A DNA stretch of 27,901 nucleotides from Octopus sinensis. Lineage: Eukaryota. A program made the position numbers and the translations under genes. Location of the stretch: the NCBI RefSeq assembly GCF_006345805.1, contig NW_021833310.1, positions 1 to 27,901 on the forward strand. Direction: 5' to 3'. Positions 5,941-27,901 of this stretch are shown here, one piece after another (the first letter of the stretch is position 1; the number at the start of each line of letters is the position of its first letter). Below the pieces are notes generated by a model that was given only the letters and a program-made list of their open reading frames with translations, was not told the DNA's origin and made no database searches.

Positions 5941-6000
5941 TATATTATTATTATTATTATTATTTATTATTATTATTATTATATTATTATTAATATTATT

Positions 6001-7085: not shown

Positions 7086-7110
7086 AATATTATTATTATT
7101 ATTATTGCTG

Positions 7111-7198
<88 letters not shown>

Positions 7199-7234
7199 TA
7201 TTATTATTATTATTATTGTTATTATTATTATTAG

Positions 7235-7460: not shown

Positions 7461-7799
7461 ATTCTTTTTGTTTTACTCAATACATACGTAATTCTACTTC
7501 AGTTTTCTAATATTCCATACATTAAGTATGTTGACAATCAAATTATCTTTTATTTAACAAGTAGGTGGCAACCCTAACCATTCAGGACACGGCCGTCACT
7601 CTGAGAGGTACTTTCAAAATACCCGCATCACCTTCTTTGTTATGCTACATTTCACTGCTACCATACACCGATCTTTTCTCGTTTCTTAGATTTATAACGT
7701 TTTTATAAATCAGCCATTATGCACTGACCGTGTGTCTCTCTCTGTTTTTCTTTTCATCCCTTCACTATTTTTTAACATCTATACGTTATCGTGTGTGAA

Positions 7800-8130
7800 G
7801 GCGCATAGCACAGTGGTTAGAGCGTCGGGCTCACAAGCATGGGGTAGTAAGTTCGAATCCTGGAGCGTACCGTGCGTTGTGTTCTTGCGCAAGACTCTTT
7901 ATTTCACATTGCTCCAGTTTACTCAGCTGTAGAAATGAGTTGCGACCTCAGTGGTGCCAAGTTGTATCGGCTTTTACTTTGCATAACATCGGTTGCTTGG
8001 AGATGAGAGGCAGGTATGCATAGCTGACTGCTGATCTTCTATAAACAACCCTGCCCATTCTTGTGCTTCGGAGGGCAACTTTCCAAGTGCAGTCCCATGG
8101 TCATTCATGACCGAAGGGGTCTTTTTACCC
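7800..8130 (+). mobile_element. tRNA-derived SINE
   Basis: Pol III A box (tagcacagtgg) and B box (gttcgaatcc) in a tRNA-like head. Mirrored at 23910-24239. Confidence 0.75.
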
Positions 8131-8364
8131 TTCCTTCTTCTACGCGCCATTACTAACTTATCTATTCCTTACTCCGCCAGATTAGAGAGACAAAGTACTG
8201 GGGTCTTTGTTATCTACTTGGCTTCCATTCATCTCAAAATTTCTGCTCTTGTGTTTGAAGTAGATAGAATTATTAGTCACTCCCCACAAATAAATAAACA
8301 AATAAATAAATAATCCCTAAAACGTCAATTTTTGCTTTAACTAACCACTGTCTGATATTCACAG

Positions 8365-8591
8365 GGTAAGACCTGGTACAATACTATCACATATTGTTAC
8401 GAGAAAAGGTTAAGAAGTGCCTACCATCGGTCGCCAAAAATTTGTCGGTCTCTTGGCTCAAGACTGATGAAAATACAAAAGAGATGTTACATGCAGAATA
8501 ATTTCTGTACTATGGGCTGGAATCACCGCGAGGATCTGTGGCATATATTCAGTGAACCATTAGAAACAGCCAAATCACCTCATTATAAAAG
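8365..8591 (+). CDS. STC: Stanniocalcin-like gene, paralog L, internal coding exon (equivalent to vertebrate STC1 exon 3)
   Basis: ctaac...ttcacAG| acceptor and AG|GTAAGT donor. 227 nt, and only one frame is open: GKTWYNTITYCYEKRLRSAYHRSPKICRSLGSRLMKIQKRCYMQNNFCTMGWNHREDLWHIFSEPLETAKSPHYK. Spacing GK-x8-C-x15-C-x10-Q-x2-CY-x3-N-x-C-x7-E-x8-P aligns without gaps to human STC1 from G88 as I recall that sequence. Confidence 0.8.
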
Positions 8592-8999
8592 GTAAGTATT
8601 TGTTATTTTGGTTGTTGTTGATGGTGGTGATAGTAATAGAAAAGGTGGTGTTTCATGCAACACTTTTGAAATGTCAGCGAAATATCGGTGCCAGCTAATC
8701 ACTTAAGGAATTCTGTCATCCATTGTATTGTGTTTGCTAAAATCATGCTTGTAGATTTACTATCTTTGCTAATCTTAACTATTTCATTTGCTATTTCCTT
8801 TAATCGTGATTCACTGTAACCGCGTTGACATAATGACGTACAAAAGCATTTGCATGTTTCCAGTAGTCCCCTATGTCAGTACAAATTCATTTTTCCTCAC
8901 AAATTAGGATTTCGGATTTGACCGAATAAGATGATGTGGATGATCGAAGCGGTGATGGAGATAAATGTGGATTGACATGGCTTTGCAAAATAAGCGTCA

Positions 9000-10460
9000 C
9001 TGTTCTGCCTCCAGAAAACTTAACTTCTGTGTCCAAAAATTCAACGCTAGTCTTTGAAAAACTAGACGTAAATTTTATGTTGGGCTTAACAGTCACAGAA
9101 ATGCAAGAAGTCTATTAAACTATCCTGTGATCCTTCCCAGACAAAAGATACGCCGTCAATGAACCGTAACCAGAATATTGGTTCATGACTAAGAAGGAAT
9201 TTGAATATCTTCAGTAACTGTGTCTCGAATTTCGTCATGAAGACATTAGCGAAATTAACTGCCATGGGGGTACCCATGGCGCAACCCTTCATCTGGTGGT
9301 AAAATCTTTGTCTAAACTTCATTGTGTTACTTTCTAACACAAACCTCAATAATCTACAAAGAAAATTTGATGGAATACTTTTGTTTGCCTGCTATTCGAA
9401 GGCATCCATGCATGCGTCTACCTTTTCATTGTAGTCAATATTAGGATATAAGGATGAAACATCCATGGTTACCAAAAAAAAAAATGTTCTCAATACGGTT
9501 TCGGTGCTTCAAAAAAAGTTGCTGATTTTAGATACAAAATCAAAGGTATCCCGAATATATGAACTTGATCGTTTTGCGACGGGGAGTAGAAAGCCATCCA
9601 GCCAATCGGAAATTTTGACCGTGCAACATTCATATCCGCTGTAAATTGGACGCATTGGAGGAAATCTTTCGAACTTTTTGTGTATTTTAGGGAGACCATA
9701 AAATACAGGTGTTCTTCCTTCTGACTATAAATTCTTAGATTCAGCCTTATTAACGAAATAGTTTTCCTCCATTTCCAGAATTATTTTGTCAAGTTTCTCT
9801 CTGTAATTGGGGTTTGGATCGACAGGTAATTCTTCATATGAAGTTTTGTCACTTAAAACTTCTTCACAAGCCGAAATATACTCACTTTTGTCCATAATTA
9901 CGATAGCGTTTCCCTTATCCGCCATGTTAATAACAATAGAATCGTTATTAGCTGGACGTCGGAGTGCATAACGTTGGAAATTTGAGAGGTTATTCCAGGA
10001 CTTCTTTCCACTTGTGTTAAGGCTTTCTCTAATGCTTGCCTGGCAAGATTCACGGAATTCTAGTAGTGCTTGTGAACGTCCATCCCAAACTTTATCTGGA
10101 TACCAATTGGGATTCTTTTCAATCCAATTATGCCAGATTCGATAATCATCATTTTTTACTTTTAGTAAACATATGATTTTCTGACTCCTTGTTACTAGCT
10201 TTTTCAAAAAAATATTCTTTCAGCTTGTGACGCCGGACAAACTGAATTAACCCGTGAGCTAGTTTATTCTTGTGGAAATTCTTAGTGCTTGGGCAAAAAC
10301 TCAGTCCAAGCTCTAAGACTGAGACATCATCTGGCGAAAGTTTTAGTTTAGATAAATTTATGACAGACTTATTCTCTAGTGTGATGGTTTTTTTCTCAGG
10401 CAAGTGGTTTTCGGAGTCTTTTTCTCATTAGATTGCTGACTACATTTTGGGCTTTGCTCG
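9000..10460 (-). mobile_element. Decayed Penelope-like element RT (no GIY-YIG seen), intronic and antisense to STC-L
   Basis: VINLSKLKLS...LELGLSFCP, ADKGNAIVIMDK.EY, LVTMDVSSLYPNI, GCAMGTPMAVNFAN, WLRFIDG and IKFT...SVEFLD motifs. Homology stops after FSGG. Confidence 0.85.
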
Positions 10461-10470
10461 AAATCTTCAC

Positions 10471-10703
10471 TTAAAACACGGAACCTATTGAGTGATAAAA
10501 TTTGTTGTGAATGTTCACATGAGAAGTTATAACTTTTAGTCGCCTTCTAAGGGTAATCCATTTCTGGATGGGTGATAGAAAGTGTCTTCTGTGGTTTTGT
10601 AGACATTTGAAAAACCTTACTTTCGGGAAAGGAACAAATTTATGTTTTCGAGGCAAAATCTTAAATGTGCTCGCATTTTTGACTGATCAAATAGAAACTT
10701 CCC
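10471..10703 (-). pseudogene. C-terminal remnant of a Ulp1/C48-like protease ORF
   Basis: Mirror of 22001-22236 (FDQSKMRAHLRFCLENN..PFPK). The upstream part is deleted in this arm. Confidence 0.55.
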
Positions 10704-10854
10704 TGTGTGTGTGTGTGTGGTGTGTGTATGTGTGTGTGTGTTGTGTCTGTCTATCTATCAGTCTGTCTGATGTCTGCCTATTTGAGTGTGTTTGTCTGAG
10801 TGTTATGATTGACTGAGTTTTTGATTAAGACACCAATCTATTTTTATATTGTAG

Positions 10855-10960
10855 GTTGTGGGAAAATATTGCCAAGATAGCTAGAGGATGCAAAACGCCA
10901 TCTGGTGAAAAATTAGCAATATGGATCAATGCCAAGTTCAAGCCACTTAAATGTTTCTAG
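10855..10960 (+). CDS. STC: Stanniocalcin-like gene, paralog L, terminal coding exon
   Basis: tttttatattgtAG| acceptor. Continues the phase-2 split codon of 8365-8591 in the longest open frame, the only one that runs the full exon in both arms: (R)LWENIAKIARGCKTPSGEKLAIWINAKFKPLKCF*. The stop position is identical in both arms. Confidence 0.75.
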
Positions 10961-11036
10961 TTACTAGGAAGAATTCAAGATTTACTGGCTAGTCGGACTC
11001 TGTAGTATAAAAAATAACCAATTAATGATTATGAGA

Positions 11037-11042
11037 AATAAA
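11037..11042 (+). promoter_or_regulatory. Candidate polyadenylation signal of STC-L
   Basis: AATAAA 76 nt after the stop, conserved in the right arm (20842-20847, minus). Confidence 0.45.
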
Positions 11043-11396
11043 GTTTCATGCCACTTCTGCTAGATCATTGCTATTTTTACTCTTATTATTGTTTGTTTCC
11101 TTGTTTCACCCCAGGGCAGCCTCGAAACAGTGTTAACTGATGTTTCAACCGTAACCATCACGAAATGTTTTGTCTTTAAATAGATTTTCTCAAATTTAAC
11201 AAATATTATTTGTTTTAGTTTTTCGTCCATATTTATTTCGAATGTTTATTGAAAATACAAAGATAGGAAAATCATTTGAATCAACAAAAATACTATGAAC
11301 ATAATAGTTAAAGCAACAATAAAATAACAACAAAATCAACAAAATATGATGCTGCTGCTGATGCTGCTGGTGCTGCTACTACTACTACTACTACTA

Positions 11397-11445
<49 letters not shown>

Positions 11446-11446
11446 G

Positions 11447-11483
<37 letters not shown>

Positions 11484-12232
11484 CTGCTAAAAGCATGAAA
11501 ACGACAACATGAATAATCCTTTCTACTATAGTCACAAGGCCTGGATTTTGTAGGGAGGGTCACAGTCGATCACATCAACCATAGTACTAAACTGGTACTT
11601 TAGTTATCGACACCTAAAGGATGAAAGGCAGTCAGCAGCGATATCTCTGCTAGTGATACTCATAGAATCATAGTGAGTAAACAGGCATTATAGTTACACA
11701 GACACACACACAAACACACACACACACACACACACACAAACATATTCATACAAACACACACATACACACACACAAACATTCATATACAAACACACACATA
11801 TTTAAAGCACAATATACGCATGTATATAATTCGGTGGTAATCACTGAAAAATCTCCTTTAGTGGACCAGACCACGAACTACATAGGAAACCAATACCTAG
11901 GAGTGTAATGTAGAGTCGTATACAGTTGTAATGCAGTCAACCTAATGAAGGAGGATTATTTCATGAAGAGTATGTAGATTGTAAAGAAAGTCAGGAGGCC
12001 TGAGATGAATATATTTATCTCACAACTTGATATCCATAGGATAACATTCATCTCGCAGTCAACATTATGTAGAAATGATTTATTTTAGTGTATAACATAT
12101 TACTTTACATGCGTGCATTCGTTTGGATGCTATAAAAGAACTATTGTACATTTTATAAACAAGCCAATGCAGATATCGAAGGCTAGTGCATCCAACATTT
12201 TCAGCTCATATATATATATATATTTTTATATA

Positions 12233-13720
12233 CAGTTGAGACCAAAATGTTCTGAACGGCATTATTTTCGTCAGAAAAGTAGGTATAAGTTTTTATCAAA
12301 GTTGTTTTACGTTCTATAATTTTCACAGACAATAAATACGATACTAATTGTTATTGTCTTTTGGTGTAATTTGAGAGGATAATACAAAAGTTATGAATGA
12401 TTTAGTGATTTACTGCAAAACCCATGGCGGCCAAAATGATCAGAACGGTTGAAATAATAACAAAATAATCAAACATGACAGATAATACTGGAATTATTTA
12501 ATAATTAGTGTGAAGCCCTTTAGCTTCATTCACACTTTGACATCTTCGACTGCATGAGGAAAATAAATTTTCAGTTTCTTGCTGGGTGATCTTATTCCAT
12601 TCTTCCTGAAGGGCATTCCATAATTGCTCGATTGTTTTAGGATTTCTGGCTTTCGAACGTTCTCCTAGAATATTCCACACATTTTCAATAGGGTTGATAT
12701 CTGGGTTTGAGCAGGCCAATCCATAACAATAACCTTTTCAGCCTTGAGGAAGTTAATGACCACCTTAGCCTTGTGACATGGGGCATTGTCCTGCGTGAAC
12801 ATGGGCGGTCGCTTAGTTGAATTTCTCAGCACAGGTAAGACATGATCTTTTACAAGTTGTTTATAAACTCCTGCATTTACCTTTCCATGTAATCACACCA
12901 AAGGGCCCACACCATCTCCAGATATCATCCCCCAAATCATGACACTACCTCCACCAAATTTAACAATAGTCTCAAGGCATTTAGGCGACAATTTTTCACC
13001 TACTTTCGACGAACGTACCTTTTCCCATCTCATCTGAGCCAAATAACATAAACTTAGATTCATCACTGAAATGCACCGTTTGCAATTTTTCTTGAAACCA
13101 CAATACATGTTCTGTTGCAAATGTAAGACGACACTTTTTATTCTTGGAGCTGATCAGTGGCTTCACTGCAGGTGCTTTTGCTTGTAGGTCATGTTCAACT
13201 AAATGACGAGACACAGTTTTTCGAGATAAAGTTTTCTTCAGTACAATGCTCATTTCTCGAGAAACAGCAGCAGCAGTTTTAAATCTGTCCTTTTTAACCA
13301 ACTTTACCATAGCACGGTCTTCTCTCTTGGTCGTTTTTCTTGGCCTACCTGTAGACTTTCTTGCTTCACACGAACCACAATAATCGTAGACCTTAAGAAT
13401 ACCGTGAACAACACTTTTTGACTTGTTAACAATCTTTGCAATAGACCCAATACTTAAATTATCCTTCTTTCGAAGCTTAATAATCTGCTGACAAATGGGT
13501 AACGGAGTAAGTGGCATTATATTAACAAATTCAAGACATTAGAGTTCGCCGGTTAAATATACTAAAACACGGAGTAAAAGCACCCGTTCTGATCATTTTG
13601 GCCGCCATGGGTTTTGCAGTAAATCACTAAATCATCCATAACTTTTGTATTATGCTCTAAAAACTTATACGTACTTTTTTGACAAAAACAATGCCGTTCT
13701 GAACATTTTGGTCGCAACTG
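12233..13720 (-). mobile_element. Tc1-family DNA transposon, both ends present, transposase frameshifted
   Basis: TIRs cagttgagaccaaaatgttc / gaacattttggtcgcaactg with TA flanks. IR/DR architecture (outer ccaaaatgttctgaacgg, inner ccaaaatgatcagaacgg). Transposase pieces with paired-like HTH, FSDESKF, KFGGGSVMIWG, QDNAPCHK and NPDINPIENVW. Confidence 0.92.
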
Positions 13721-13861
13721 TATATATATATATATATATATCTTTTTTCTCTCTTTTTTTCTCTCCTTGTTTCTTTCCTTGTTACCCTGGTAACTATTTA
13801 TTTATTTTTTCCGTGTTAATTGTTAACAAGGTAAAAATACACTCATCTATGTATAATACAT

Positions 13862-13891
<30 letters not shown>

Positions 13892-13893
<2 letters not shown>

Positions 13894-14467
13894 TAATAAA
13901 TATAAAGGTAGCAAAAAATTCTAGAAAAAATTCTCCGCTACCAGCGGTCTAGTGAGAAGGAAAAGATAGTCAAAGATTATATAATATACATTCAACAATA
14001 TAAGGAATGGCCATAATAGGACATTCGACTCACTAGAAAGAGCAGCCAAACTCAAACCGCTAAATAGTTGTAATTGTGAAATAGAAAGAGAAATAAAAAC
14101 GTTTACTCCTTTCATCTCTGGACTATGCATAGTTTCGACAAACTTTGGTAAACAAATTAATTAAATTAAATTAAATTAAATTTATTTACAACTGGCGTGC
14201 CTCGTCAGCAGAGAAGCCGAGGACGAGCATATGTCCACGAGGCGATGGTAAAGAAGCCTCCAGTCTATATGCTCTAAATTTTCAAAATTCTACCGCAATC
14301 GCGCGGTCTTCTCAGCAGCAAATATAAATTGCTGGTTTAATTTCAAAATTAGCCAAAAAATCATTAATTAATAAATATAAGGGTAGCAAAAAATTCTAGA
14401 AAAAATTCTCCGCTATCAGCGGTTTAGTGAGAATGAAAAGATAGTCAAAGACTATATAATATACATT

Positions 14468-14477
<10 letters not shown>
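13892..14477 (-). mobile_element. Retrozyme-like element: 111-bp direct repeats 475 bp apart enclosing a hammerhead, flanked by (TA)n
   Basis: Repeats at 13892-14002 and 14367-14477 differ at ~5 positions. (TA)n runs abut both ends. Confidence 0.7.
14115..14214 (-). ncRNA. Type I hammerhead ribozyme with extended stem II
   Basis: Minus strand: UCUCUG - CUGACGA - GGCA[57 nt]UGUC - GAA - ACUAUGCAUAGU - C/ - CAGAGA. Canonical core, 6-bp stem I, palindromic stem III, and a GUC cleavage triplet between 14121 and 14120. Confidence 0.85.
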
Positions 14478-14542
<65 letters not shown>

Positions 14543-14721
14543 ATAAAATCCGAAATATTGAATACAAGGTAAGTGTACATCAATTCATATATTTTTTTCT
14601 TGTGATTTAACTTGCTTTTACTTTGCATAGTTCTGGCCTTACCCCCGATCCTTATACAATATATTCTACACAATGCTTCATAGTAATTACTCCATTCCAT
14701 ATATGTATACATATACATCTT

Positions 14722-14777
<56 letters not shown>

Positions 14778-14929
14778 AAACACACCTGCATTATGTGTTT
14801 TGTTCGTATTTGGATATATGCATATTATTGTGGGGTTCACATATTTCGACGCCAAACTTGGTCCATTGTTACATGGAGTTATAAAATCTAGATAAAAACT
14901 TATTCAGGTTGGAGGGATGGCAAAGTGGT

Positions 14930-16560
14930 TGGGAGCCATGCTTAAAATTTCGAAGTATGAATTATTGCTTGTACGTGTGAGAGGAGAAAGTTTTCTCCCT
15001 AATAATTAAAACATTCACTGATGATGTTTGGGGATTTGGATTTTCAGTAATGCAGTGTTCGCCTCTGCTGCTCTGTCCCTTGTATTTGCTGGCCTTAGCT
15101 TTAATGCTTCAGTTTATATGGGAACTCTCACGTCTCTCTCTTTAAGTGTCTATACCATATTGAATAAAAATATCTTTTGTTTTTACCTATGAACGAATCC
15201 AAATGTTGCTTATATCTTAATATGAAGGTATTTCCCGTCATACCAATGTAAATTTTTGTTGTTCGGTTCAAATCCGAAATGCTGGACACTACTTCTTTTT
15301 TCTGGCACCTATTCTGAAATTAAAGGATCTTTAGGGTATGTCTCTAACGTTGTTAATTTTGTTGTGGTTGAAAATAATCAACTCTATATTGAGGAAGCAA
15401 CTATGGCTAACTTTGACCGTATTTCTATTGAAGATCTTATAGTATTTATGTGATAGAAGTCAGTGGTTGTCTTATAATTTTTCTAGCTGGTCTATCTACA
15501 TTTGGTTCAATATAACTTACTTTACTCTTAAAGCTGAACCTTTCTAATGCACCGATATAATATGGGGAAGCCTTTTTGAAAGTAGCTTTATCAGAGGATA
15601 GGTTGGAATCACGCGACTGATAATATTGCTTGATGACTGACTGTGTGTCGTTAGTATCCTCATTTGGTTTAAATTTATTCATATTAATGTCGAGGAAATT
15701 AACTTATTTAAGGTTAGTGTTATTTGTGGTTTTTAGGTTCAGTTGGCTAAATATTTTGCATAACTTTTCTCTTACTTTATCCATATAGTGTTCGTATTTG
15801 TTATATTCCACTCCAAGACCTTTAATAATCTCTTTTATTAAAGAACATCTAGAATCTGAAGGCTAACCTGATTTAGTGCCTCTGCACCATCATAGCTCCT
15901 CTTAGTGACCTCAAATAACTGGTCTCATTTTTTCCACAACGGAAATTATTAAAAAAATAATCACTTCCTTGCATTCATTATTATGGCTATATCAGTATTA
16001 GTGACGGTTAAATGTGCTTTTGGAGCAGGTTTTGGAGATCGAGGAGTCAACTCCGCGATAAATTTGTATTTGTACTCGATAAATTTGTATTTGGACTTGA
16101 ATTTTATTGAAACATTCAATTTTCTTGAGCCATGTCGTCTTATCTTCAATTTCTCTGAACATATCCATTGAGTAAAGGTCTGAGGAGCTCTGATGTGTCG
16201 TATGATCTCTAATATAGATTTGTTAATAATGAATAATTCGCTTTTCGTGGGATTTTTCTATCTACAGCTAAGCTTTTGCTTAAAGGTTTTGCCTTTGTGG
16301 TCTTTCAATGTTATAAAATGTTTACGTGGGGTGATATCTTCGATTAGGCTTTTTTGCTTCAACATCGATAAAATTACAAGTCGTAGGGTTCATGTTCTTA
16401 TATGGTTTGGTTATATATATGGTTATCTGCCTCATAAACAACTTTTTTGTTTTATCTGCGTTTATAAATTTGTTTGGGGATTTTCCAAAAAGATTCAAGT
16501 TATGTTTGTAATTTGTGTTGGAAGGTGTCAGATCTATGGTTGAATTTGTCACATTAAACT
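14930..16560 (-). mobile_element. Heavily decayed Penelope-like element with RT and C-terminal GIY-YIG (Naiad-like)
   Basis: INADKT, NPTKSEL, RSYDGAE (GSYDGAE-type motif), [26 protein letters not shown] and KIYIGMTGNTF..RY..H..SF read across frameshifts. Confidence 0.7.
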
Positions 16561-17671
16561 AATTTTATGAGGTGGTGGGTTTTTGTAAGGTCTAAAACCG
16601 TAACTGTCCTGCGAACGAAGACTGGCTTTCATCTTAGGACGTCTTTTTGTTTTATCGATAACATGTTTGGCGTAAACATATGCTCGCTTGTCTGCCTGTC
16701 TTCCTGCTTGCCCGCATGGCTGCCTGTTTGTGTGTCTGTCTGTCTATCAGTGAATCTATCTATCTGACTATGTATCCTCCTTCATGTTGTTATTGTTCTT
16801 GCAGCAGAAACAGTAACAATAGTGCTAAATCTTCTCAGCAGCAAGGTACCACCTGAAACCCAACCAACCAGAAATTATCTCACAGTCAACCGCCCTAACT
16901 TGTTTATTTCACTTGGTGGATTCTTCAAGCATTTAACTCTACAAAGTAACTGGTCAGCATCTGCTGACAAATGTCACAACACAAGCACGAATTTGGACCT
17001 GAAAAAAGTATATCTAAGGTCTATAGATGCTAGGAGATTCCTTGCTAATTACATGCGTGGCTTTCTTTACAGTATGTGACCACGAGAGTTCTTGGAAGGA
17101 TTCTTGATGAGAGAGATGGTATGAATAAGCAGATGTTTTTCACTAGTTGGCGACATACTTCTAGCAGCGGTAAGAAAGAAATCAGCGAAGACAGCGACAA
17201 CGCCATATGTGCATTATTGTGTAGGTAAGGCTCATGATATAAGAGATTCTAATATGAGCGACCTGCACCCAACATACAGAATCACAGCATGCAAAACGTA
17301 CATATATACGCTCTTATACATCAATATATACATACTTACAAATATACATACAATTTACGGAGATGTACTTGCATAGCAAGTGACTTGATCTGAGGGCGTG
17401 TGCTGAAACAAAGACAATGGCAGCCTGGAAGAAGTTTATAAGACATTCAAGAACACACAAAAAACCGTTAGCTTCACTTCAACATTTAAATTTAATTTTT
17501 TGTCATAATAATTTCGTGTGTTTATAAAAACATACAAACACATAAATTATTCTTCAAAACTATTAAGCCAGAGCAATATTTTTTTTCTGGCGAACTATAC
17601 TCCTCAAATTCATGACACTCACCTCTAGTTAGGAAATGGAATTAAAGAAGGCATTGCAATATTCAAATTTA

Positions 17672-17995
17672 TCGAAGATGTGAAAGTGTGAATGAAGCTA
17701 AAGGGCTTCGCACTAATTATTAAATAATTCCAGTATTATCTGTCATGTTTGATTATTTTGTTATTTTTTTCAACCGTTCTTGATCATTTTGGCCGCCATG
17801 GGTTTTGCAATAAATCACTAAATCATTCATAACTTTTGTATTATCCTCTCAAATTACACCAAAATCTCACACAATAACAATTAGTATCGTATTTATTGTC
17901 TGTGAAAATTATAGAATATAAAACAACTTTGATAAAAACGTATACGATATTTTCTGACGAAAATAATGCCGTTCGGAACATTTTGGTCTCAACTG
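17672..17995 (+). mobile_element. Inverted copy of the Tc1 3' end (last transposase codons plus full TIR); inner end of the right arm
   Basis: Reverse complement of 12233-12549, ending gaacattttggtctcaactg|TA. Confidence 0.9.
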
Positions 17996-18193
17996 TATAT
18001 AAATATATATATATATATATATATAGAATGGTTGTATACTGTCAATCTAACACGAACGTGACAGTCGGGGGGTACACCACCGCTGTTTAGCCCTAGGAAG
18101 CGTCGACGCCTCCTGATGGCTTTGACACATTTCCCCATGTCCTTATATACATTTACGAAGGGGAGACAAATACCCCCAGCCGGCCGGGCTGCA

Positions 18194-18238
18194 TCTAGGA
18201 ACACGTGTTTCAGGATGATTGTCCTTCGTCGGCCTAGA
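18194..18238 (-). ncRNA. Type I hammerhead ribozyme (U4C core variant), copy 1
   Basis: UCUAGG-CCGACGA-AGGA caauca UCCU-GAA-AC ACGU GU-U/-CCUAGA. GUU triplet with predicted cut at 18200/18199. Confidence 0.72.
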
Positions 18239-18365
18239 GTAGCAGACACCGGTCAGCTGACGATTAAATCTTTATTATAGGCATGAAGGCCCGAATTAAG
18301 AGGGGGCATTACAAAACAGGACATGGGGTACATATAATAAAAAAATCGAAAATTATGAAAATGAA

Positions 18366-19106
18366 TTATTTGAAATGAATTAAATGAAATGGCTTACGAG
18401 CCCCACCAAAACTCGCAGTTCCATTTAAAATACAATTCTGCTCTGCTGGGCGTTCATCTGTAATGTATTCTATTAAATCCTCCTGATCCACAACAGCCGA
18501 CAGAGTGTCATAACGTACACAATACAATTCAGAAACAGCAAACTCCAAATTCAATTTCATCATTGTCTCTCCCTCCACGATCGCCGCCTTCCAATGGTCC
18601 GCAAATATTTTTGGGTCCAACTTCACTCTGACTAAACCTTTCCTACCTGACAACTTCTTTTCCATATCCTTGTCTTTCAGGTATACCATCACCGCTTTGA
18701 GTTTCTTTCCCTTGGGTCTTCCTCCTTCCTTACATACTTTCAACTGCTCTTCCACTCTTCTGTCCCATTCTTCATCTGCTGTTAATTTTGCCGGTTCACT
18801 TGCTTTCGCTTCTGCATCATTCTCTTCGCACGTTCGATCTTCGATTTCGTCTGTTGTCTTCCTTTTGTTTTTTTTCTTTTTTTGAAATTTAGGTGGTGAT
18901 TCCACCCTCGTTCTCTTTCTATCTTCTGTTCTTTCCTTTTCTTTCTCCAACTCGTCACCACTTTCCACATTATCTGTAGTCTCGATCTCCTCTGCTATAT
19001 ACGCCTTCCGCCATTCTTCCGCCAAAGCCTCCGGTGTCATCGTTTCCTTTTGTACCTCTCTTAGCGGACACATATCCTTCATGTGGCCTTCTGATGGCTT
19101 TGACAC
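18366..19106 (-). CDS. Orphan protein, 246 aa from GTG (238 aa from ATG at 19082); charged K/E-rich N half with NLS-like KKKKNKRK and a more hydrophobic C half
   Basis: 741-nt uninterrupted frame in AT-rich DNA, followed by AATAAA. No RT, endonuclease or transposase motif recognised. Confidence 0.6.
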   Translation of the reverse strand: MSKPSEGHMKDMCPLREVQKETMTPEALAEEWRKAYIAEEIETTDNVESGDELEKEKERTEDRKRTRVESPPKFQKKKKNKRKTTDEIEDRTCEENDAEAKASEPAKLTADEEWDRRVEEQLKVCKEGGRPKGKKLKAVMVYLKDKDMEKKLSGRKGLVRVKLDPKIFADHWKAAIVEGETMMKLNLEFAVSELYCVRYDTLSAVVDQEDLIEYITDERPAEQNCILNGTASFGGARKPFHLIHFK

Positions 19107-19172
19107 ATTTTTCCTGTGTCCTTATATACATTTACGAAGGGGAGACAAGTACCCCCAGCCGCCCGGGCTGCA

Positions 19173-19217
19173 TCTAGTGACACGTGTTTCAGGATGATTG
19201 TCCTTCGTCGGCCTAGA
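19173..19217 (-). ncRNA. Type I hammerhead ribozyme (U4C core variant), copy 2
   Basis: Same fold with a GUC triplet and predicted cut at 19179/19178. The first stem I pair is a G-A mismatch. Confidence 0.65.
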
Positions 19218-19386
19218 GTAGCAGACACCGGTCATATTCTATTGCCCCACCACCGTACATGTCTCTACGAGAGATTTAGAAATTTAGTATTTCTGATTTT
19301 GATAATCAGTGAATAGACTTCACTGAAATTTAGTTATATACATTACGAGTCGAGACAGATATCGTCAGCTGACCGGTGTCTGCTAC

Positions 19387-19431
19387 TCTAGGCCGACGAA
19401 GGACAATCATTCTGAAACACGTGTCCCTAGA
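19387..19431 (+). ncRNA. Type I hammerhead ribozyme (U4C core variant), copy 3
   Basis: UCUAGG-CCGACGA-AGGA caauca UUCU-GAA-AC ACGU GU-C/-CCUAGA. GUC triplet with predicted cut after 19425. Confidence 0.72.
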
Positions 19432-19656
19432 TGCAGCCCGGCCGGCTGGGGGTATTTGTCTCCCCTTCGTAAATGTATATAAGGACACAGGAAAAATGTG
19501 TCAAAGCCATTAGGAGGCGTTGATGCTTCCTAGGGCTAAACAGCAGTGGTGTACCCCCCGACTGTCACGTTCGTGTTAGATTGACAGTATACAACAATTC
19601 TATCGCCCCACCACCGTACATGTCTCTACGAGAGATTTAGAAATTTAGTATTTCTG

Positions 19657-19718
<62 letters not shown>

Positions 19719-20189
19719 CTGAAAATATTGGATACACTAGCCTTCGATATCTGCATTGGCTTGTTTATAAAATGTACATAGTTCTTTTATAGCATCCAAA
19801 CGAATGCACGCATGTAAAGTAATATGTTATACACTAAAAAATCATTTCTACATAAGTTGACTGCGAGATGAATTTATCCTATGGATATCAAGTTGTGAGA
19901 TAAATATATTCATCTCAGGCCTCCTGACTTTCTTTAGAGTCTACATACTCTTCATGAAATAATCCTCCTTCATTAGGTTGACTGCATTACAACTGTATAC
20001 GACTCTACATTACACTCCTAGGTATTGGTTTCCTATGTAGTTCGTGGTCTGGTCCACTAAAGGAGATTTTTCAGTGATTACCACCGAATTATATACATGC
20101 GTATATTGTGCTTTAAATATGTGTGTGTTTGTATATGAATGTTTCTCTGTGTGTATGTGTGTGTTTGTATGAATATGTTTGTGTGTGTG

Positions 20190-20224
<35 letters not shown>

Positions 20225-20444
20225 GTCTGTGTAACTATAATGTCTGTTTACTCACTATGATTCTATGAGTATCACTAGCAGAGATATCGCTGCTGACTGC
20301 CTTTCATCCTTTAGGTGTCGATAACTAAAGTACCAGTTTAGTACTATGGTTGATGTGATCGACTGTGACCCTCCCTACAAAATCCAGGCCTTGTGACTAT
20401 AGTAGAAAGAATTATTCATGTTGTCGTTTTCATGCTTTCAGTAG

Positions 20445-20518
<74 letters not shown>

Positions 20519-20923
20519 GTAGTAGCAGCAGCAGCAGCAGCAGCATTTGTTGTTATTTTATTGTTGCTTTAACTATTATGTTCATAGTATTTTTGTTGAT
20601 TCAAATGATTTTCCTCTCTTTGTATTATTCAAATAAACATTCGAAATAAATATGGACGAAAAACTAAAACAAATAATATTTGTTAAATTTGAGAAAATCT
20701 ATTTAAAGACAAAACATTTCGTGATGGTTACGGATGAAGCATCAGTTAACACTGTTTCGAGCCTGCCCTGGGGTTAAACAAAGAAACACAAACAATAATA
20801 ACAGTAAAAATAGCAATGATCTAGCAGAAGTTGCATCAAACTTTATTTCTCATAATCATTAATTGGTTATTTTTTATACTACAGAGTCCGACAAGCCAGT
20901 AGATCTTGAATTCTTCGTAGTAA

Positions 20924-21029
20924 CTAGAAACATTTAAGTGTCTTCAACTTGGCATTGATCCATCTTGCTAATTTTTCACCTTCTTGCGTTTTGCATCCTC
21001 TAGCCATCTTGGCAATATTTTTCCACATC
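20924..21029 (-). CDS. STC: Stanniocalcin-like gene, paralog R, terminal coding exon
   Basis: tgtAG| acceptor and frame (G)MWKNIAKMARGCKTQEGEKLARWINAKLKTLKCF*. 106 nt, the same length as the left copy. Confidence 0.75.
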
Positions 21030-21140
21030 CTACAATATAAAAAATAGATTGGTGTCTTAATCAAAAACACTCAGTCAATAACACTCAGACAAACACACTC
21101 AAATAGGCAGACATCAGACAGACTGATAAATAGACAGACA

Positions 21141-21246
<106 letters not shown>

Positions 21247-21689
21247 ACAGAGTTTGCTTTTATTGTCTAATGCTAACTCAGTTTGAATCTGGAGGCAAAT
21301 TCAACTCTACAAGAGGTAGGAAAATACCAATTCCAGAAGCAAGAAAAGGCGAAAGCAACTGTAGGGAACCTGCTTTCTATATTGCAACAAATCTCAGACT
21401 AAGAGAATCAAGTGGATTGGAATGGTGGACTCGTTTTTTTATCATAAGAAAGAAGCCACATTTCAGCACTGATTTGATGAGACACTTGTCAGGGGATTGC
21501 ACGTGGCCTCGTGCCCTTTTGTTGTTGCCCAACTCCAGCAGAGCGTACAGATTAAGAAGCGAGACACTTGCGACCCTCAGATACTCGCTGAATACGAAAG
21601 GGATTCCCTACATTGACATGGTTTTAGCCACCAACAGAAGAGCGAGCAATATCTCTAAGCAGCTTCTACAATTTCTGTGTGGAGCACAT

Positions 21690-22236
21690 GCAGTGACGTG
21701 AATAATAATCACACGGAATTTCTAACATACAATCAACACCGCACACTGTTTATTCAACACGACAGGAACAATCATTTTGTTTTATCAACCAATTTTTTCG
21801 GAGATGTTTATATTTATGTCAGTTTGAATTTACCAGTTTCGCAGGAACTAATGGCACAAAATCAACGTTGTATTCACCACAAACAAACATCACTCCTACA
21901 ATTCAACAAGTTCATATAATTAATCCCCAAGTTGGCGAATATGATTGTGAGCCTTTTGCCCTGGCGTATGCATTTGAACTGGTCATTGGAAATGCTCCAG
22001 GAAAGTTTCTATTTGATCAGTCAAAAATGCGAGCACATTTAAGATTTTGCCTCGAAAACAATAAATTTGTTCCTTTCCCGAAAGTAAAGGTTTTTCAAAT
22101 GTCTACAAAAACCACAGAAGACACTTTCTATCACCCATCCAGAAATGGATTACCCTTAGAAAGGCGACTAAAAGTTATAACTTCTCATGTGAACATTCAC
22201 AACAAATTTTATCACTCAATAGGTTCCGTGTTTTAA
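21690..22236 (+). pseudogene. Degenerate Ulp1/C48-like cysteine protease ORF (TE-associated)
   Basis: FIQHDRNNHFVL (His), IYVSL (YDSL-like), QQ...YDCEPFALAYA (Cys motif, DCG-like) and FDQSKMRAHLRFCL...PFP. One frameshift. Confidence 0.55.
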
Positions 22237-23045
22237 GTGAAGATTTCGAGCAAAGCCCAAAATGTAGTCAGCAATCTAATGAGAAAAAGACTCCGAAAAC
22301 CACTTGCCTGAGAAAAAACCATCACACTAGAGAATAAGTCTGTCATAAATTTATCTAAACTAAAACTTTCGCCAGATGATGTCTCAGTCTTAGAGCTTGG
22401 ACTGAGTTTTTTTGCAAGCACTAAGAATTTCCGCAAGAATAAACTAGCTCAAGGGTTATTTCAGTTTGTCCGGCGTCACAAGCTGAAAGAATATTTTTTT
22501 GAAAAAACTAGTAACAAGGAGTCAGAAAATCATATGTTTACTAAAAATAAAAAATGATGATTATCGAATCTGGCATAATTGGATTGAAAAGAATCCCAAT
22601 TGGTATCCAGATAAAGTTCGGGATGGACGTTCACAAGCACTACTAGAATTCCGTGAATCTTGCCAGGCAAGCATTAGAGAAAGCTTAAGACAAGTGGAAG
22701 AAGTCCTGGAATAACCTCAAAATTTCCACGTTATGCACTCCGACGTCCAGCTAATAACGATTCTATTGTTATTAACATGGCGGATAAGGGAAGCGCTATC
22801 GTCTTCATGACGAAATTCGGGACACAGTTACTGAAGATATTCAAATTCCTTCTTAGTCATGTACCAATATTCTGGTTACGGTTCAGTGACGACGTATTTT
22901 TTTTCTGGGAAGGATCACAGGATAGTTTAATAGACTTCTTGCATTTCTGTGACTGTTAAGCCCAACATAAAATTTACGTCTAGTTTTTCAAAGACTAGCG
23001 TTGAATTTTTGGACACAGAAGTTAAGTTTTCTGGAGGTAGAATAG
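22237..23045 (+). mobile_element. Right-arm copy of the Penelope-like RT, with a 657-bp internal deletion
   Basis: Mirror of 9000-10460. The junction at 22801-22802 fuses MADKGSAIV to FMTKFGTQ. Confidence 0.85.
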
Positions 23046-23455
23046 TGACGCTTATTTTGCAAAGCCATGTCAATCCACATTTATCTCCATCATCGCTTCG
23101 ATCATCCACATCATCTTATTCGGTCAAATCCGAAATCCTAATTTGTGAGGAAAAAATGAATTTGTACTGACATAGGGGACTACTGGAAACATGTAAATGC
23201 TTTTGTATGTCATTATGTCAAACGCGGTTACAGTGAATCACGATTAAAGGAAATAGCAAATGAAATAGCTAAGATTAGCAAAGATAGTAAATCTACAAGC
23301 ATGATTTTAGCAAACACAATACAATGGATGACAGAATTCCTTTAGTGATTAGCTGGCACCGACATTTCGCTGACATTTCAAAAGTGTTGCATGAAACACC
23401 ACCTTTTCTATTACTATCACCACCATCAACAACAACCAAAATAACAAATACTTAC

Positions 23456-23682
23456 CCTCTATAATGAGGTGATTTGGCTGTTTCTAATGGTTCACTAAAT
23501 ATATACCACAGATCCTCGCGGTGTGTCCAGCCCAAAGTACAGAAATTATTCTGTAAGTAACATTTCTTTTGTGTTTTCATCAGTATTATGCCAATAAACG
23601 GACAAACGATAGACGAACGTTTGTAGAGATTTATTAACTTTTTCACGAAACATCTTGTGATACTATAGTACCAGTTCTTACC
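23456..23682 (-). CDS. STC: Stanniocalcin-like gene, paralog R, internal coding exon
   Basis: ttcacAG| ... GG|GTAAGT, 227 nt: GKNWYYSITRCFVKKLINLYKRSSIVCPFIGIILMKTQKKCYLQNNFCTLGWTHREDLWYIFSEPLETAKSPHYR. All Cys and Trp are shared with the left copy and there are no indels. Confidence 0.8.
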
Positions 23683-23909
23683 CTGTGAATATTAGACAGT
23701 GGTTAGTTAAAGCAAAAATTGACGTTTTAGGGATTATTTATTTATTTATTTGTGGGGAGTGACTAGTAACTCTATCTACTTTTAACATAAGAGCAGTAAT
23801 TTTGAGAGGAATGGAGGCCAAGTAGATAACAAAGACCCCAGTACTTTGTCTCTCTAATCTGGCGGAGTAAGGAATAGATAAGTTAGTAATGGCGCGTAGA
23901 AGAAGGAAG

Positions 23910-24239
23910 GGTAAAAAGACCCCTTCGGTCATGAATGACCATGGGACTGCACTTGGAAAGTTGCCCTCCGAAGCACAAGACTGGTCAGGGTTGTTTATAG
24001 AAGATCAGCAGTCAGCTATGCATACCTGCCTCCCATCTCCAAGCAACCGATGTTATGCAAAGTAAAAGCCGATACAGCTTGGCACCACTGAGGTCGCAAC
24101 TCATTTCTACAGCTGAGTGAACTGGAGCAATGTGAAATAAAGAGTCTTGCGCAAGAACACAACGCACGGTACGCTCCAGGATTCGAACTCACTACCCCAT
24201 GCTTGTGAGCCCCACGCTTAACCCACCGTGCTATGCGCT
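23910..24239 (-). mobile_element. tRNA-derived SINE (mirror of 7800-8130)
   Basis: Reverse complement, roughly 97% identical by eye. Confidence 0.75.
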
Positions 24240-24599
24240 TCACATACGATAACGTATAGATGTTAAAAGTAGTGAAGGGATAAAGAAAAAAGAGCAACAC
24301 GGTAGTGCATAATGGCTGAAAATAAAAACGTAGAATCTAAGGGTGTAAATGGCTGTGGTAGTAGTAAAAACGTTATAAATCTAAGAAACGAGAAAAAGTC
24401 GGTGCGGGTAGCAGTTGAAAGTACCCTAACAAAGAGTGATGCGTTCTTTGAAAGTACAATGGACCTTGTCCACTGACTTATTTCCGTACTGATAATTTTT
24501 TGTCTTGTTATAAAAATTAATTTGATATGGAATATTAGAAATGGATGTAGAATTACGTATGTAATTGAATTAAAAAAACTTAAAAATAATAATCGTTCT

Positions 24600-24800
24600 A
24601 TTACAGCGCAAGCCTGAAATATTGGGGGGAGAAAACCTAGTCGATTACATCGACGCCAATGATCAGCTGGAATTTATTTTTATCCACTCTGAATGGATGA
24701 AGTGCAAAGTCGACCTCGGCGGAATTTGAGCTCAGAATGCAAAGACGGACGAAATGCCGCTAAGCATTTTTCCCAGAGTATTAACGATTGGCCTGCTCGC
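24600..24800 (-). mobile_element. SINE-like fragment (mirror of 7235-7460)
   Basis: Reverse complement match. Confidence 0.65.
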
Positions 24801-24810
24801 CTGCCTTACA

Positions 24811-24848
<38 letters not shown>

Positions 24849-24935
24849 ATAATAAATAATAATAATAATAATAATAATAACAACAATAATAATAATAATA
24901 ATAATAACAACAACAACAATAATAATAATAATAGC

Positions 24936-25002
<67 letters not shown>

Positions 25003-25019
25003 ATAATATTATTAATGTA

Positions 25020-25956
25020 GATGCCTTATACAGCTGGAAAACTACTATAAAATAACCACCATAGGACTGCAAAAATATCTTCAGAAGGAAGGAAAACTGA
25101 TACAAATAGCAGCAAAACACGAGCAAAACAATAAACTGTTCTCAGTATTTAAGGAAGCTGACAAATACAAACAAGAAATCATACCACCTAATAAATATGA
25201 AGAAGAAGAAGAAGATGAAGAAACAACAAAAACTATAAAACAAATGAAATCCAAACTAAAAATAGAACAGCAACGAACCATGATAAAACGATGGCAAGAA
25301 AAGCCCCTTTATGGTAAATACAGGACTAAACTAAACGCAAAAGAAATAGACAAAGAAAAATCCCAGCAATGGTTGAGAAGCTCAGGACTCAAAGCAGAGA
25401 CAGAGGGATTTTTAATTGCAGCACAAGACCAAAGCCTCCCCACCAGAAATTACCAAAAACATGTAATGAAAAGAAATATAACAAGTAACTGCAGAATATG
25501 TGGAGATGGACAAGAAACAATAAATCATATTATCTCTGGCTGCCCAGTCCTGGCTAAGAAGGAATATATTCACAGACATGACAGAGCTGGAACCTACATA
25601 CACTGGAAGCTATGCCAACATTGTGGAATAACAACAGAAAAAAAGATGGTATAGGCACACACCAGAAAAGGTCACAGAAAACGAGAAAGCAACCATTCTC
25701 TGGGATATGCCGATACACACAGATGGAGAAATTAAGGCTAACAGACCAGATATAGTTGTCAGAGATCATGAAGAAAAAAAATGCTTTCTAATTGATGTAT
25801 CAATACCGGCAGATGACAACGTGTCTCTAAAAGAAATGGAGAAACTTTCAAAATACAAAGACCTGGAAATAGAGGTAACCAGAATGTGGAATCTAAAAAC
25901 AGAAACAATTCCTATCATAGTAGGTGCATTAGGCACGATAAAAAATAAAACTACTA

Positions 25957-25960
<4 letters not shown>
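25020..25960 (+). mobile_element. R4/Dong family B (mirror of 6001-7085), with a ~158-bp deletion near the 3' end
   Basis: CRICGDGQETINH and NRPDIVVRD...LIDVSIP motifs. Confidence 0.85.
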
Positions 25961-26035
<75 letters not shown>

Positions 26036-26038
<3 letters not shown>

Positions 26039-26155
26039 CATGTGATGCATGTGCCTGTTGTACCCTTATCAGACGGGTAGTCATGATGGGTATACTGGGC
26101 TTCGTAATTTTACCCTACCCAGTGTCACTTGATGGCATGCACTGCTCGCTCACTC
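26036..26155 (+). mobile_element. 5'-truncated extra copy of the 530-bp retroposon, right arm only
   Basis: Matches only the terminal ~120 bp, sits between (AAT)n runs and is absent from the left arm. Confidence 0.7.
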
Positions 26156-26186
<31 letters not shown>

Positions 26187-26225
26187 TTAGTAGTAGTAGT
26201 AATAATAATAATAATAATAATAATA

Positions 26226-26269
<44 letters not shown>

Positions 26270-26272
<3 letters not shown>

Positions 26273-26845
26273 GCCCTGATGCAGTACCACTACCCAGATG
26301 CAGTACCAGGCAGTGGCTCTCATGGCTTCTGATCTTAACTGATTGGAAGTGTTATCATGTACATTGTTGTGTCTTGGTATAAAAGATGGGCTACAGCAAA
26401 TATTCTGCTCAGTACCACAGATTTGCTTGTCAGTTGTTTGACTTTAACCAGTTGAGCATGTCCCTTAGTGGCTGACGATATGTGCATCTATGATCACGAG
26501 CAGAAGTAGTGGGGGAGCATCATAGCCATGTGTTGAGAGGGATTCTTTGGGGTTTGAATAATTCACCTCTGGAAACATGGGTGGTTCTTTCAACATCCTT
26601 AAACAACCCTTATTCAGGGACCTTTTGAGCGGGATGGGCTATTCAACCAGAAAAAAATTCTAACTGGGCCCCACCTGCAAGGTCATGTCCTGTTTATCTT
26701 TTTATGAGATCACCATGTCGCGCACATATGGTTGTGATGCATGTGCCTGGTGTACCCTTATCAGACGGGTAGTCATGATGGGTATATTGGGCTTCGTATA
26801 TTTTACCCCAGTGTCACTTTGATGGCATGAACTGCTCTCTCACTC
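26270..26845 (+). mobile_element. 530-bp retroposon (mirror of 5353-5885)
   Basis: Reverse complement match, with a short 5' extension containing a duplicated gatgcagtacca. Confidence 0.75.
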
Positions 26846-26864
26846 AATAATAATAATAATAATA

Positions 26865-26914
<50 letters not shown>

Positions 26915-27901
26915 TATAAGTTGATAGCCTACCACATAGATGGATTAAGAAATGCCTGGAAATGTATAATATAGCACCTACTCTGCGAAACTTTTTGATT
27001 GTAAGTATGAGATCATGGAGAACCACACTAAATTTGAACAGTGACAATGAATCTCTAAATGCTGGTGATGTAAAAATTTCATGTGGCATTTTCCAGAGTG
27101 ACTCACTATCACCACTCCTCTTTTGTTTAGCCTTAATATTTCTCTCAAAACTGCTCAATGACTCTCAGTACGGATATAAAATGTTTGATAAAAATATAAA
27201 TCATCTCATTTACATGGATGATTTAAAGCTCTTTGCAAAAAATGACCAACAACTCAAGGGCTTACTAGCGATTGTCAAACAATTCAGTGACGACATCAGA
27301 ATGCAATTTGGCCTCGATAAATGTGCAAAAGCTACCTTTATCAAAGGAAAAATGACAGAAACATCTAACGTTAACCTTGACCAGCTGAATGTCATAAAAG
27401 AATTAGACCCAGCAGAGAGCTACTAGTACCTAGGGGTAATTGAAGAGGACGGAATAAGGCATTCAGAGATGAAGGAAAGGATCAGGAGAGAATGTTATCG
27501 CAGAGTAAGAGCAACACTCAAGACAGAGGTGAATGCGTGAAACAGGATCGAAGCAATCAATGCATTAGCCATACCAGTCGTGACTTACAGTTTCAATATC
27601 GTTAACTGGTCAATTACTGAAATATGTCAGCTTGACAGAAAAATACGAAAACTGTTGACAATGAATAGAATGCACCACCCTAAGGCAGATACAGAACGAC
27701 TTTATATGCCAAGAAAAGAGGGAGGCCGTGGTCTTTTACAACAGGCAATAACAATGAAGATTGCTACAACTGGCCTAGACACCTACCTGAAAAAGTCTGA
27801 GGACTGGATGTTAAACTTGTCTCAAACATGAAAACAAGAAAGCATCATACTCAGTAACAAACACAGGCAAAGGAATATCTAAGTGAATTCCGAATACAAC
27901 A
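26915..27901 (+). mobile_element. R4/Dong family A (mirror of 4226-5208), runs off the window
   Basis: IFQSDSLSPLLFCLAL and YMDDLKLF RT motifs. Confidence 0.85.

Follow-up and report, generated by a model that had tools for sequence, protein, structure and literature searches.

An intact open reading frame (ORF) lying between two hammerhead-like motifs of the same sense raises the question of how such an arrangement came to be part of a chromosome, and in which form of RNA the ORF would be expressed. The case considered here is an element of Octopus sinensis found in contig NW_021833310.1 of the RefSeq assembly GCF_006345805.1; the window, that is, the whole stretch of DNA that was analysed, comprises 27,901 nucleotides (nt), and positions are those of its forward strand. 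A first-pass annotation of this window had proposed a non-autonomous element of the Penelope-like or retrozyme kind that would yield a ~1-kb, possibly circular, coding RNA. From the analysis described below, we assign a probability of roughly 0.6 to the following reading: a non-autonomous element of the retrozyme kind, dependent on a Penelope-like element (PLE), gave rise to a composite insertion, and one of its units carries a gene. The circular coding RNA is disfavoured for this copy, and we regard it as quite unlikely.

The limits of the element were established from an empty site present in the same window. A large inverted (palindromic) duplication makes up the window, in which 4226-12549 corresponds to 17672-27901 with 89-97% identity; the two arms are ~5.1 kb apart (12550-17671), and the hammerhead element is present in the right arm only. 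The sequences that flank the element recur at 12005-12430, where only a short (AT)n run lies between them; 18023-19658 is thereby identified as a single insertion into a (TA)n tract. The element is thus a discrete block of 1.6 kb whose limits agree with those given by the first-pass annotation, with an uncertainty of ~2 nt that is caused by the microsatellite. Any target-site duplication would be hidden, because the target is itself a microsatellite. The (TA)n tract measures ~60 nt on one side of the element (19660-19720), ~20 nt on the other (18004-18022), and ~20 nt at the empty site (12213-12226).

Table 1. Features of the insertion and of its reference site; where the coordinates descend, the block is given in the direction of the minus strand.
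Feature	Position	Strand	Remarks
Whole composite insertion	18023..19658	-	Coding part sense on the minus strand; flanks colinear with the empty-site paralog
Empty-site paralog	12208..12232	+	Other arm of the large inverted duplication; reference evidence, outside the element
A1 (62 nt; attctat and tail T)	19658-19597		Outermost block, read on the minus strand
Second attctat and tail T	19597..19658	+	Outer end of the inverted part; putative reverse transcription start site 2
Inverted x-L5-L3 copy	19603-19361		95.5% identical to the 3' direct copy
Spacer S	19360-19298		Between inverted x-L5-L3 and A2
A2 (62 nt)	19297-19236		98.4% identical to A1, 361 nt away; followed by one filler base
One full 361-nt non-coding unit	19236..19596	+	Copies of the 62-nt repeat 361 nt apart
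L5, 5' direct repeat (149 nt)	19234-19086	-	Part of the pseudo-LTR common to all three copies
Segment I (821 nt)	18265..19085	-	ORF, 3 nt of leader and ~100 nt of trailer; junctions from alignment
Intact ORF, 238 aa from ATG (246 aa from GTG at 19106)	18366..19082	-	Homology and shuffle test
TATAATAAA	18271..18281	-	Includes AATAAA (18271-18276); putative function
x-L5-L3, 3' direct copy (242 nt)	18023..18264	-	Ends in attctat, putative reverse transcription start site 1
Hammerhead-like motif 1	19168..19224	-	C3 at 19211; predicted cut after C 19179; A.G mismatch at pair 1.1-2.1
Hammerhead-like motif 2	18189..18245	-	C3 at 18232; predicted cut after U 18200
Hammerhead-like motif 3, best preserved	19380..19436	+	Predicted cut after C 19425

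Inside these limits the element is composed of repeated blocks (Table 1). The L5 block at 19086-19234 is 94% identical to 18108-18255, with a spacing of 979 nt, and the two belong to pseudo-long terminal repeats (pseudo-LTRs) in direct orientation. The rest of the element is inverted with respect to this coding part and is made of 1.17 copies of a non-coding unit of 361 nt, in which the order of the blocks is attctat-T(54)-S'(63)-x(10)-L5(149)-L3(85); the inverted arms are 94-96% identical. The coding unit of 979 nt corresponds to the 361-nt unit in which 203 nt (L3-T-S') are replaced by the 821-nt segment I, and this replacement accounts for the 979-nt spacing. Segment I keeps no residual similarity to L3-T-S' above that of shuffled sequences, and no poly(A) remnant was found at the I/x junction. 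The heptamer attctat closes the direct part (18029-18023) and also opens the inverted part when the latter is read in its own sense (19236-19242), a single base separating the inverted part from the 5' end of L5. When the direct and the inverted parts are joined at attctat, they give one colinear sequence of 1,626 nt with the order L5-I-x-L5-L3-T-S'-x-L5-L3-T. In the inverted copy the second attctat and T are contiguous with L3, and its outer end reaches 54 nt beyond that of the direct copy, that is, there is a one-sided 'tail'. Pseudo-LTRs, an adjacent inverted copy that is truncated at its 5' end, a tail on one side and a (TA)n target are together the signature of a Penelope-like insertion, and no reverse transcriptase (RT) or endonuclease is encoded inside 18023-19658; the earlier assignment to a non-autonomous element of the Penelope-like or retrozyme kind is thus upheld. 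The 3' hammerhead repeat and L3 are traversed by an open frame of 86 codons (17989-18249, minus strand) that reaches the end of the insertion; in the inverted copy this frame ends within the tail, and in the 5' copy an indel breaks it. The frame gave no Pfam match and is probably not coding.

The hammerhead-like motifs share a sequence of 32 nt that is present three times, at 18201-18232 (-), 19180-19211 (-) and, with one mismatch, 19393-19424 (+), while none is expected by chance. The predicted cut sites of the two same-sense motifs are 979 nt apart and bracket the intact ORF. In the predicted structure, helix I is formed by CUGC..UCUAGG paired with CCUAGA.GCAG (6 bp, an internal loop and 4 bp), and helix II by AGGA/UCCU (4 bp and a loop of 6 nt), after which comes G12-A13-A14; helix III is A-CACGUG-U, with the palindrome ACACGUGU, followed by C or U at position 17 (U in the 3' copy). 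Helix III has an A-U and a C-G pair closed by the palindromic ACGU and extends to 8 bp between two copies in predicted dimers; predicted monomers form helices I and II, and predicted dimers form an intermolecular helix III. Helix I is open-ended and helices II and III are closed, as in the type I topology. The core, however, is CCGACGA (C3-C4-G5-A6-C7-G8-A9) in the three copies, so that U4 is the only conserved position of the consensus C3-U4-G5-A6-N7-G8-A9...G12-A13-A14...A15.1-U16.1-H17 that is not matched; C4 is seen in three copies that share one origin. In addition, the pair 10.1-11.1 is A-U, instead of the G-C pair conserved in hammerheads (PMC4209133). The first-pass annotation had described two minus-strand type I hammerheads and a third facing the other way; its cut positions, the 979-nt spacing and the third motif were confirmed, but the motifs are not canonical hammerheads.

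The departure from the consensus is also evident in the searches. A descriptor with the canonical CUGANGA core finds no motif in the whole window. A relaxed descriptor in which position 4 is free finds 0.025 motifs per shuffled window, and the motif is therefore not a chance match. In Rfam, no hammerhead was detected at the gathering score, nor at E<=10 over 2.7 kb; when 101 nt were used, Hammerhead_1 (RF00163) was the top family, with a full-length alignment (1-45/45) in the same register and a score on motif 3 of 16.3 bits, below the gathering score of 34. The U4C change reportedly lowers activity considerably in vitro, yet it is tolerated in a viroid, where it is reported to be active enough in vivo for infectivity (PMC3088659), and poor in vitro cleavage has been described for metazoan PLE hammerheads even when their core is the consensus one (PMC4209133). 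Given the non-canonical cores and the sub-threshold score, any self-cleavage is probably weak; these motifs are U4C variants, and they are probably weak or inactive in this copy.

The two kinds of unit differ in their predicted folding. For the 361-nt unit the linear fold has an energy of -133.6 kcal/mol versus -90.7 +/- 5.4 kcal/mol for the shuffled sequences (z -8.0), and the circular fold a z of -7.4; a repeat run gave z -8.8, and 18 control windows had a mean of -0.75 and a minimum of -3.9. This strong fold is due to a helix of ~50 bp in which 19334-19392 (S'-x and the 5' part of L5) pairs with 19426-19482 (the 3' part of L5), and which is an extension of hammerhead helix I with the core of motif 3 at its tip. 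The possibility that spacer S is a degraded direct copy of L5 was rejected, since S is the intrinsic complementary arm of helix I (~50 pairs). The high self-pairing that is typical of retrozymes is thus seen in the 361-nt unit but not in the coding unit: the 979-nt RNA that extends from hammerhead to hammerhead is no more structured than its shuffled versions (z +1.62).

The interval between the two same-sense cut sites contains the intact ORF of 238-246 aa and an AATAAA, as had been reported. The ATG is located 3 nt past the L5/I junction, the ORF starts 96 nt past the hammerhead cut site, and it has its own stop codon and trailer. The stop-free run spans 251 codons, a length reached by 0 of 2000 dinucleotide shuffles of the 979-nt interval (mean 110, maximum 246); alone, this test is only moderately strong, because the strand is purine-rich. 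The protein is rich in K and E, with an isoelectric point of 5.7, a basic SPPK-KKKKNKRK patch and a predicted helical structure. The first-pass annotation had considered the ORF an orphan, but two relatives, with E values of 2.8e-13 and 2.6e-11, were detected when 1.84 billion representative proteins were searched in full with HMMER. Both of them, A0A0L8FHC2 and A0A0L8G840, are uncharacterised proteins of Octopus bimaculoides with 36-39% identity to the ORF; their scores are 66.7 and 60.3 bits, and 600 composition-preserving shuffles gave at most 13.4 bits. The second homolog (P0002) is colinear over its full length, with a common N-terminus M-x3-CPLRE, and the ORF and its relatives have in common the blocks DRKR-x-RVESPPK, a basic KKKK patch, GRPKG-x-KL and GL-x-RVKL. 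The ORF therefore belongs to a real, fast-evolving protein family. Profile searches of a word-indexed protein database yielded nothing beyond the first homolog (P0001), no contig was matched when the ORF (as 238 and as 246 aa) and the two homologs were looked up as exact sequences, and viral and metagenome collections, scanned by pattern and by protein, yielded no relative. No match to the ORF protein was obtained in Pfam, PDB (E<=10) or PHROG, and consequently the idea that it is a fragment of a PLE or the ORF1 of a long interspersed nuclear element (LINE), which the first-pass annotation had named among the outcomes that would overturn its proposal, is unsupported. An AlphaFold model built from a three-sequence alignment reached a predicted local distance difference test score of 44.6, too poor for a fold search. 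Given the basic SPPK/KKKK patch, the protein is likely nuclear and nucleic-acid-binding. The intactness of the ORF was rejected as a sign of selection, the neutral survival at ~5% repeat divergence being estimated as ~0.1-0.4.

Signals that may serve for the expression of the ORF are present in the element. The AATAAA could act as its poly(A) signal, and TATAATAAA, in which it is included, could also be a TATA-like promoter box, placed 26 nt upstream of the next L5 start. L5 also contains TATATAA at 19122-19128; this is likewise a weak promoter candidate, ~30 nt upstream of a plausible start at ~19098 that would give a short leader before the ATG. If the ORF is expressed, an ordinary capped linear mRNA seems the most likely form.

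With regard to the origin of the insertion, the colinear 1,626-nt sequence suggests the template. A source array would have been transcribed into a linear RNA of ~1.63 kb, 5'-L5-ORF-x-L5-L3-T-S'-x-L5-L3-T-3', with the hammerheads uncut. An RT-endonuclease supplied in trans by a PLE would nick both strands of the (TA)n target, and reverse transcription would begin at two internal sites of this RNA: a first cDNA, started at attctat and extended to the 5' end of the RNA, would give the direct coding part, and a second one, started at the end of tail T on the other strand of the target and stopped at attctat, would give the inverted part, the two cDNAs being joined head to head. Two features of the copy bear on the template. 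The repeat past the ORF continues into L3-T-S', hence the template was neither a 979-nt circle nor a homogeneous 979-nt tandem; and the copy begins, at its 5' end, 55 nt upstream of the cut site, with the three motifs copied intact, which indicates that the template was uncut. The 979-nt RNA lacks both of the sites where the cDNAs of the insertion would have begun. The purified Poseidon protein of Anolis cleaves and extends both target strands and prefers AT-rich DNA; its reverse transcription starts at two adjacent internal sites, the interval between them being the genomic 'tail', and hammerhead cleavage is dispensable for insertion, the unprocessed RNA being the dominant substrate (PMC11167929). 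In genomes, PLEs form partial tandems, next to which lies an inverted copy with a truncated 5' end, and a tail is present on one side (PMC8557442). The locus fits the descriptions of Poseidon and of PLEs on every point except its longer tail (54 nt). The strong self-pairing of the 361-nt unit, as in retrozymes, and an RT remnant with a PLE-type DKG motif in the same window (DKG: PMC8557442) were also counted in favour of the composite insertion.

Several points weigh against this reading. It is built on one locus; the 361-nt period depends on an overlap of only 62 nt; the tail of 54 nt exceeds the 30-40 nt described for PLEs; the putative start sites are ~170 and 225 nt past the cut site, compared with ~90 nt in the Anolis element; and the window contains no autonomous partner with a similar pseudo-LTR. 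A less likely origin of the empty site is that, in the other arm, the sequence between the flanking (TA)n tracts was precisely deleted. A further challenge would be that at least two independent insertions occurred in one (TA)n hotspot, a short retrozyme fragment and an unlinked ORF chimera in opposite orientation, the common attctat boundary being then a coincidence or the result of homing to the tail. The (TA)n tract is in fact considerably longer on one flank of the insertion than it is at the empty site, and the preference of PLE endonucleases for AT-rich DNA, along with their recognition of their own tail region, would favour nested or adjacent insertions (PMC11167929). Nonetheless, only one base separates the two parts, with no microsatellite remnant there, and the 5' truncation of the inverted part matches the 3' end of the direct part to the base, a coincidence estimated at ~1 in 100 for a random truncation in the 361-nt unit; we hold this explanation to be improbable.

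Other explanations concern the coding part. The hammerheads could release the 979-nt RNA, which would be circularised, act as transposition intermediate and be translated, i.e. the element would be a protein-coding retrozyme. The two same-sense motifs bracket the complete ORF exactly, the palindromic helix III permits a double-hammerhead fold, the U4C change is reportedly active enough in vivo for the infectivity of a viroid (PMC3088659), PLE hammerheads can be assisted by protein (PMC11167929), and the ORF family is conserved at the protein level, including the N-terminus of P0002. Yet the repeat past the ORF runs into L3-T-S' of the short unit and the ORF is not repeated, the 5' end of the copy includes an uncut hammerhead, and the 979-nt RNA is unstructured (z +1.6) and devoid of both putative RT start sites; moreover, the cores depart from the canonical form and score below the Rfam threshold, and retrozymes are described as non-coding. 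In addition, the cut RNA would be uncapped, and the use of AAUAAA removes the 3' hammerhead, so that polyadenylation and the 3' cut exclude each other; an mRNA and a ribozyme-excised RNA would therefore be alternative fates. Taken together, this origin is unlikely, and it is on the same grounds that the ~1-kb circular coding RNA of the first-pass annotation was set aside. A broader version, in which octopods harbour an old PLE-dependent hammerhead lineage of 'coding retrozymes' with its own gene, whose homologs would also lie in hammerhead-flanked units and whose RNA would be processed, perhaps circularised, and translated, is a long shot. The element could instead be an autonomous PLE that lost its RT and endonuclease by internal deletion, the ORF being a remnant N-terminal domain or an upstream ORF. 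The ORF occupies the position of a PLE ORF, starting shortly past the hammerhead; the ORF of the Anolis element starts inside the hammerhead (PMC11167929), and some PLE types have a coiled-coil ORF1 (PMC8557442); the ORF protein is predicted to be helical and is rich in K and E. Against this, the HMMER search returned two short octopus proteins and none that bears an RT, the ORF matches nothing in Pfam and does not resemble the PLE-like remnant of the window, it has its own stop and trailer, and segment I is unlike the sequence that it replaced; a deleted PLE is thus a doubtful explanation.

Within the composite insertion of a PLE-dependent element, the gene is about as likely to be a captured passenger as an accessory gene belonging to the element itself. 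For a captured gene speak the non-coding nature of retrozymes and the fact that the substitution destroys the structure of the unit and removes the RT start sites. For an own gene, the ORF is compact and sits at the PLE ORF position just past the hammerhead, and its relatives are divergent paralogs known from a single lineage, as is common for transposon proteins. An analogy for the latter case is found in the ORF1-only 'half' LINEs (HAL1), which are non-autonomous, keep a small non-enzymatic ORF and rely on the RT of a partner; HAL1 belongs to a different class without ribozymes, and is defined by the homology of its ORF to the ORF1 of the partner, a homology that is absent in the present element.

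The remaining sequence of the window contains remnants of other mobile elements. The PLE-type remnant mentioned above is a degraded RT at 8887-10403 (-), with a paralog at 21998-22802 (+) and the motif ADKGNAIVIMD; it matches RVT_1 weakly (E 0.084), and its copy in the right arm lacks ~650 bp (9252-9899). It was rejected as the autonomous partner, since it has no sequence similarity to the element and no hammerhead. A segment of 815 bases (21183-21997) that starts inside an (AC)n run is present in the right arm only; the ORF at 21868-22236 crosses its boundary, and therefore it probably reflects a deletion in the left arm at 10704/10705. This ORF and that at 21270-21701 have no Pfam match. In the spacer between the arms there is a remnant of a Tc1/mariner-like transposase (12498-13517, minus strand; HTH_Tnp_Tc3_2, E 2.4e-18), whose terminal region recurs in short pieces at 13581-13741 and 17771-18016. 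Fragments of LINE-type RT and zf-RVT were detected at 3358-4548, 6387-7259, 25244-25654 and 26962-27426, duplicated between the arms; hence the window holds several non-LTR retrotransposon remnants.

The element is a PLE-type, retrozyme-like non-autonomous insertion, and a unit that bears a gene is unusual for such elements. Retrozymes and the derivatives of PLE pseudo-LTRs are described as strictly non-coding, and the ORF-bearing unit departs from that description. If this unit represents a family and not a one-off chimera, such elements can capture or maintain genes, and would constitute a DNA-encoded link from the retrozymes to ribozyme-bearing RNA circles that code for protein; a lineage of coding retrozymes, if true, would be a chromosomal counterpart of such circles. 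The locus also offers a readable in vivo footprint that matches recent in vitro findings on a PLE enzyme, with both target strands apparently used as primers, reverse transcription starting at two internal sites that define the 'tail', and a template RNA whose hammerheads were uncut. This footprint of dual-strand, internally initiated reverse transcription is unusually clean, given that it is usually blurred in assemblies.

Among the known systems, the delta-like and other ribozyme-bearing circular RNA agents (PMC7936874) share with the element a small ORF accompanied by hammerhead motifs. This likeness, as the first-pass annotation had already stated, is one of architecture only: the ORF has no PDB chain match at E<=10 and no relative in viral contigs, the element is chromosomal DNA with an empty-site paralog, and its 979-nt RNA is not rod-like (z +1.6); furthermore, both of the ribozymes that bracket the ORF are in the sense of the ORF, and the third is found in the adjacent inverted copy and not in the antisense of the same unit. 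The plant LTR retrozymes (PMC4918200) are also non-autonomous, with same-sense hammerheads in terminal repeats that bracket a centre of ~600-1000 nt; in contrast, their type III hammerheads, primer-binding site, polypurine tract and 4-bp target-site duplications are not seen here, nor are the dependence on Gypsy, the non-coding centre and the highly branched, stable RNA. The PLEs (PMC8557442, PMC11167929) resemble the element in their direct pseudo-LTRs with hammerheads, an inverted copy that is truncated at its 5' end and adjoins the upstream repeat, a tail restricted to one end, a target that is AT-rich or (TA)n and the sign of an uncut RNA template. They differ in that an autonomous PLE encodes a telomerase-like RT, together with a GIY-YIG endonuclease in the EN+ clades, whereas the sole ORF of the element has neither a Pfam match nor an RT homolog, and HMMER detects no PLE protein related to it; the tail of the element is also longer (54 versus 30-40 nt). 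The metazoan non-LTR retrozymes have monomers of ~170-400 nt with a type I hammerhead in each unit (PMC7229834), and are reported to be non-autonomous PLE derivatives that originate from pseudo-LTRs (PMC7229834; bioRxiv 10.64898/2026.07.22.740005) and, according to the latter source, "don't encode any proteins". The 361-nt unit agrees with them in its size, its single type I hammerhead with a helix III of 2 bp and a palindromic loop suited to dimeric cleavage, its helix I of 6 bp and helix II of 4 bp, its strong predicted self-pairing, a GC content below 45%, the lack of an RT and a presumed dependence on PLEs. The element departs from them in having 1.17 units with a 62-nt overlap and not a long array, and a core with C4 and A10.1-U11.1. 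As for the non-coding character of retrozymes, the 361-nt unit conforms to it and the 979-nt unit does not: beyond the published size range, the latter carries an 821-nt coding segment whose ORF has homologs in another octopus.

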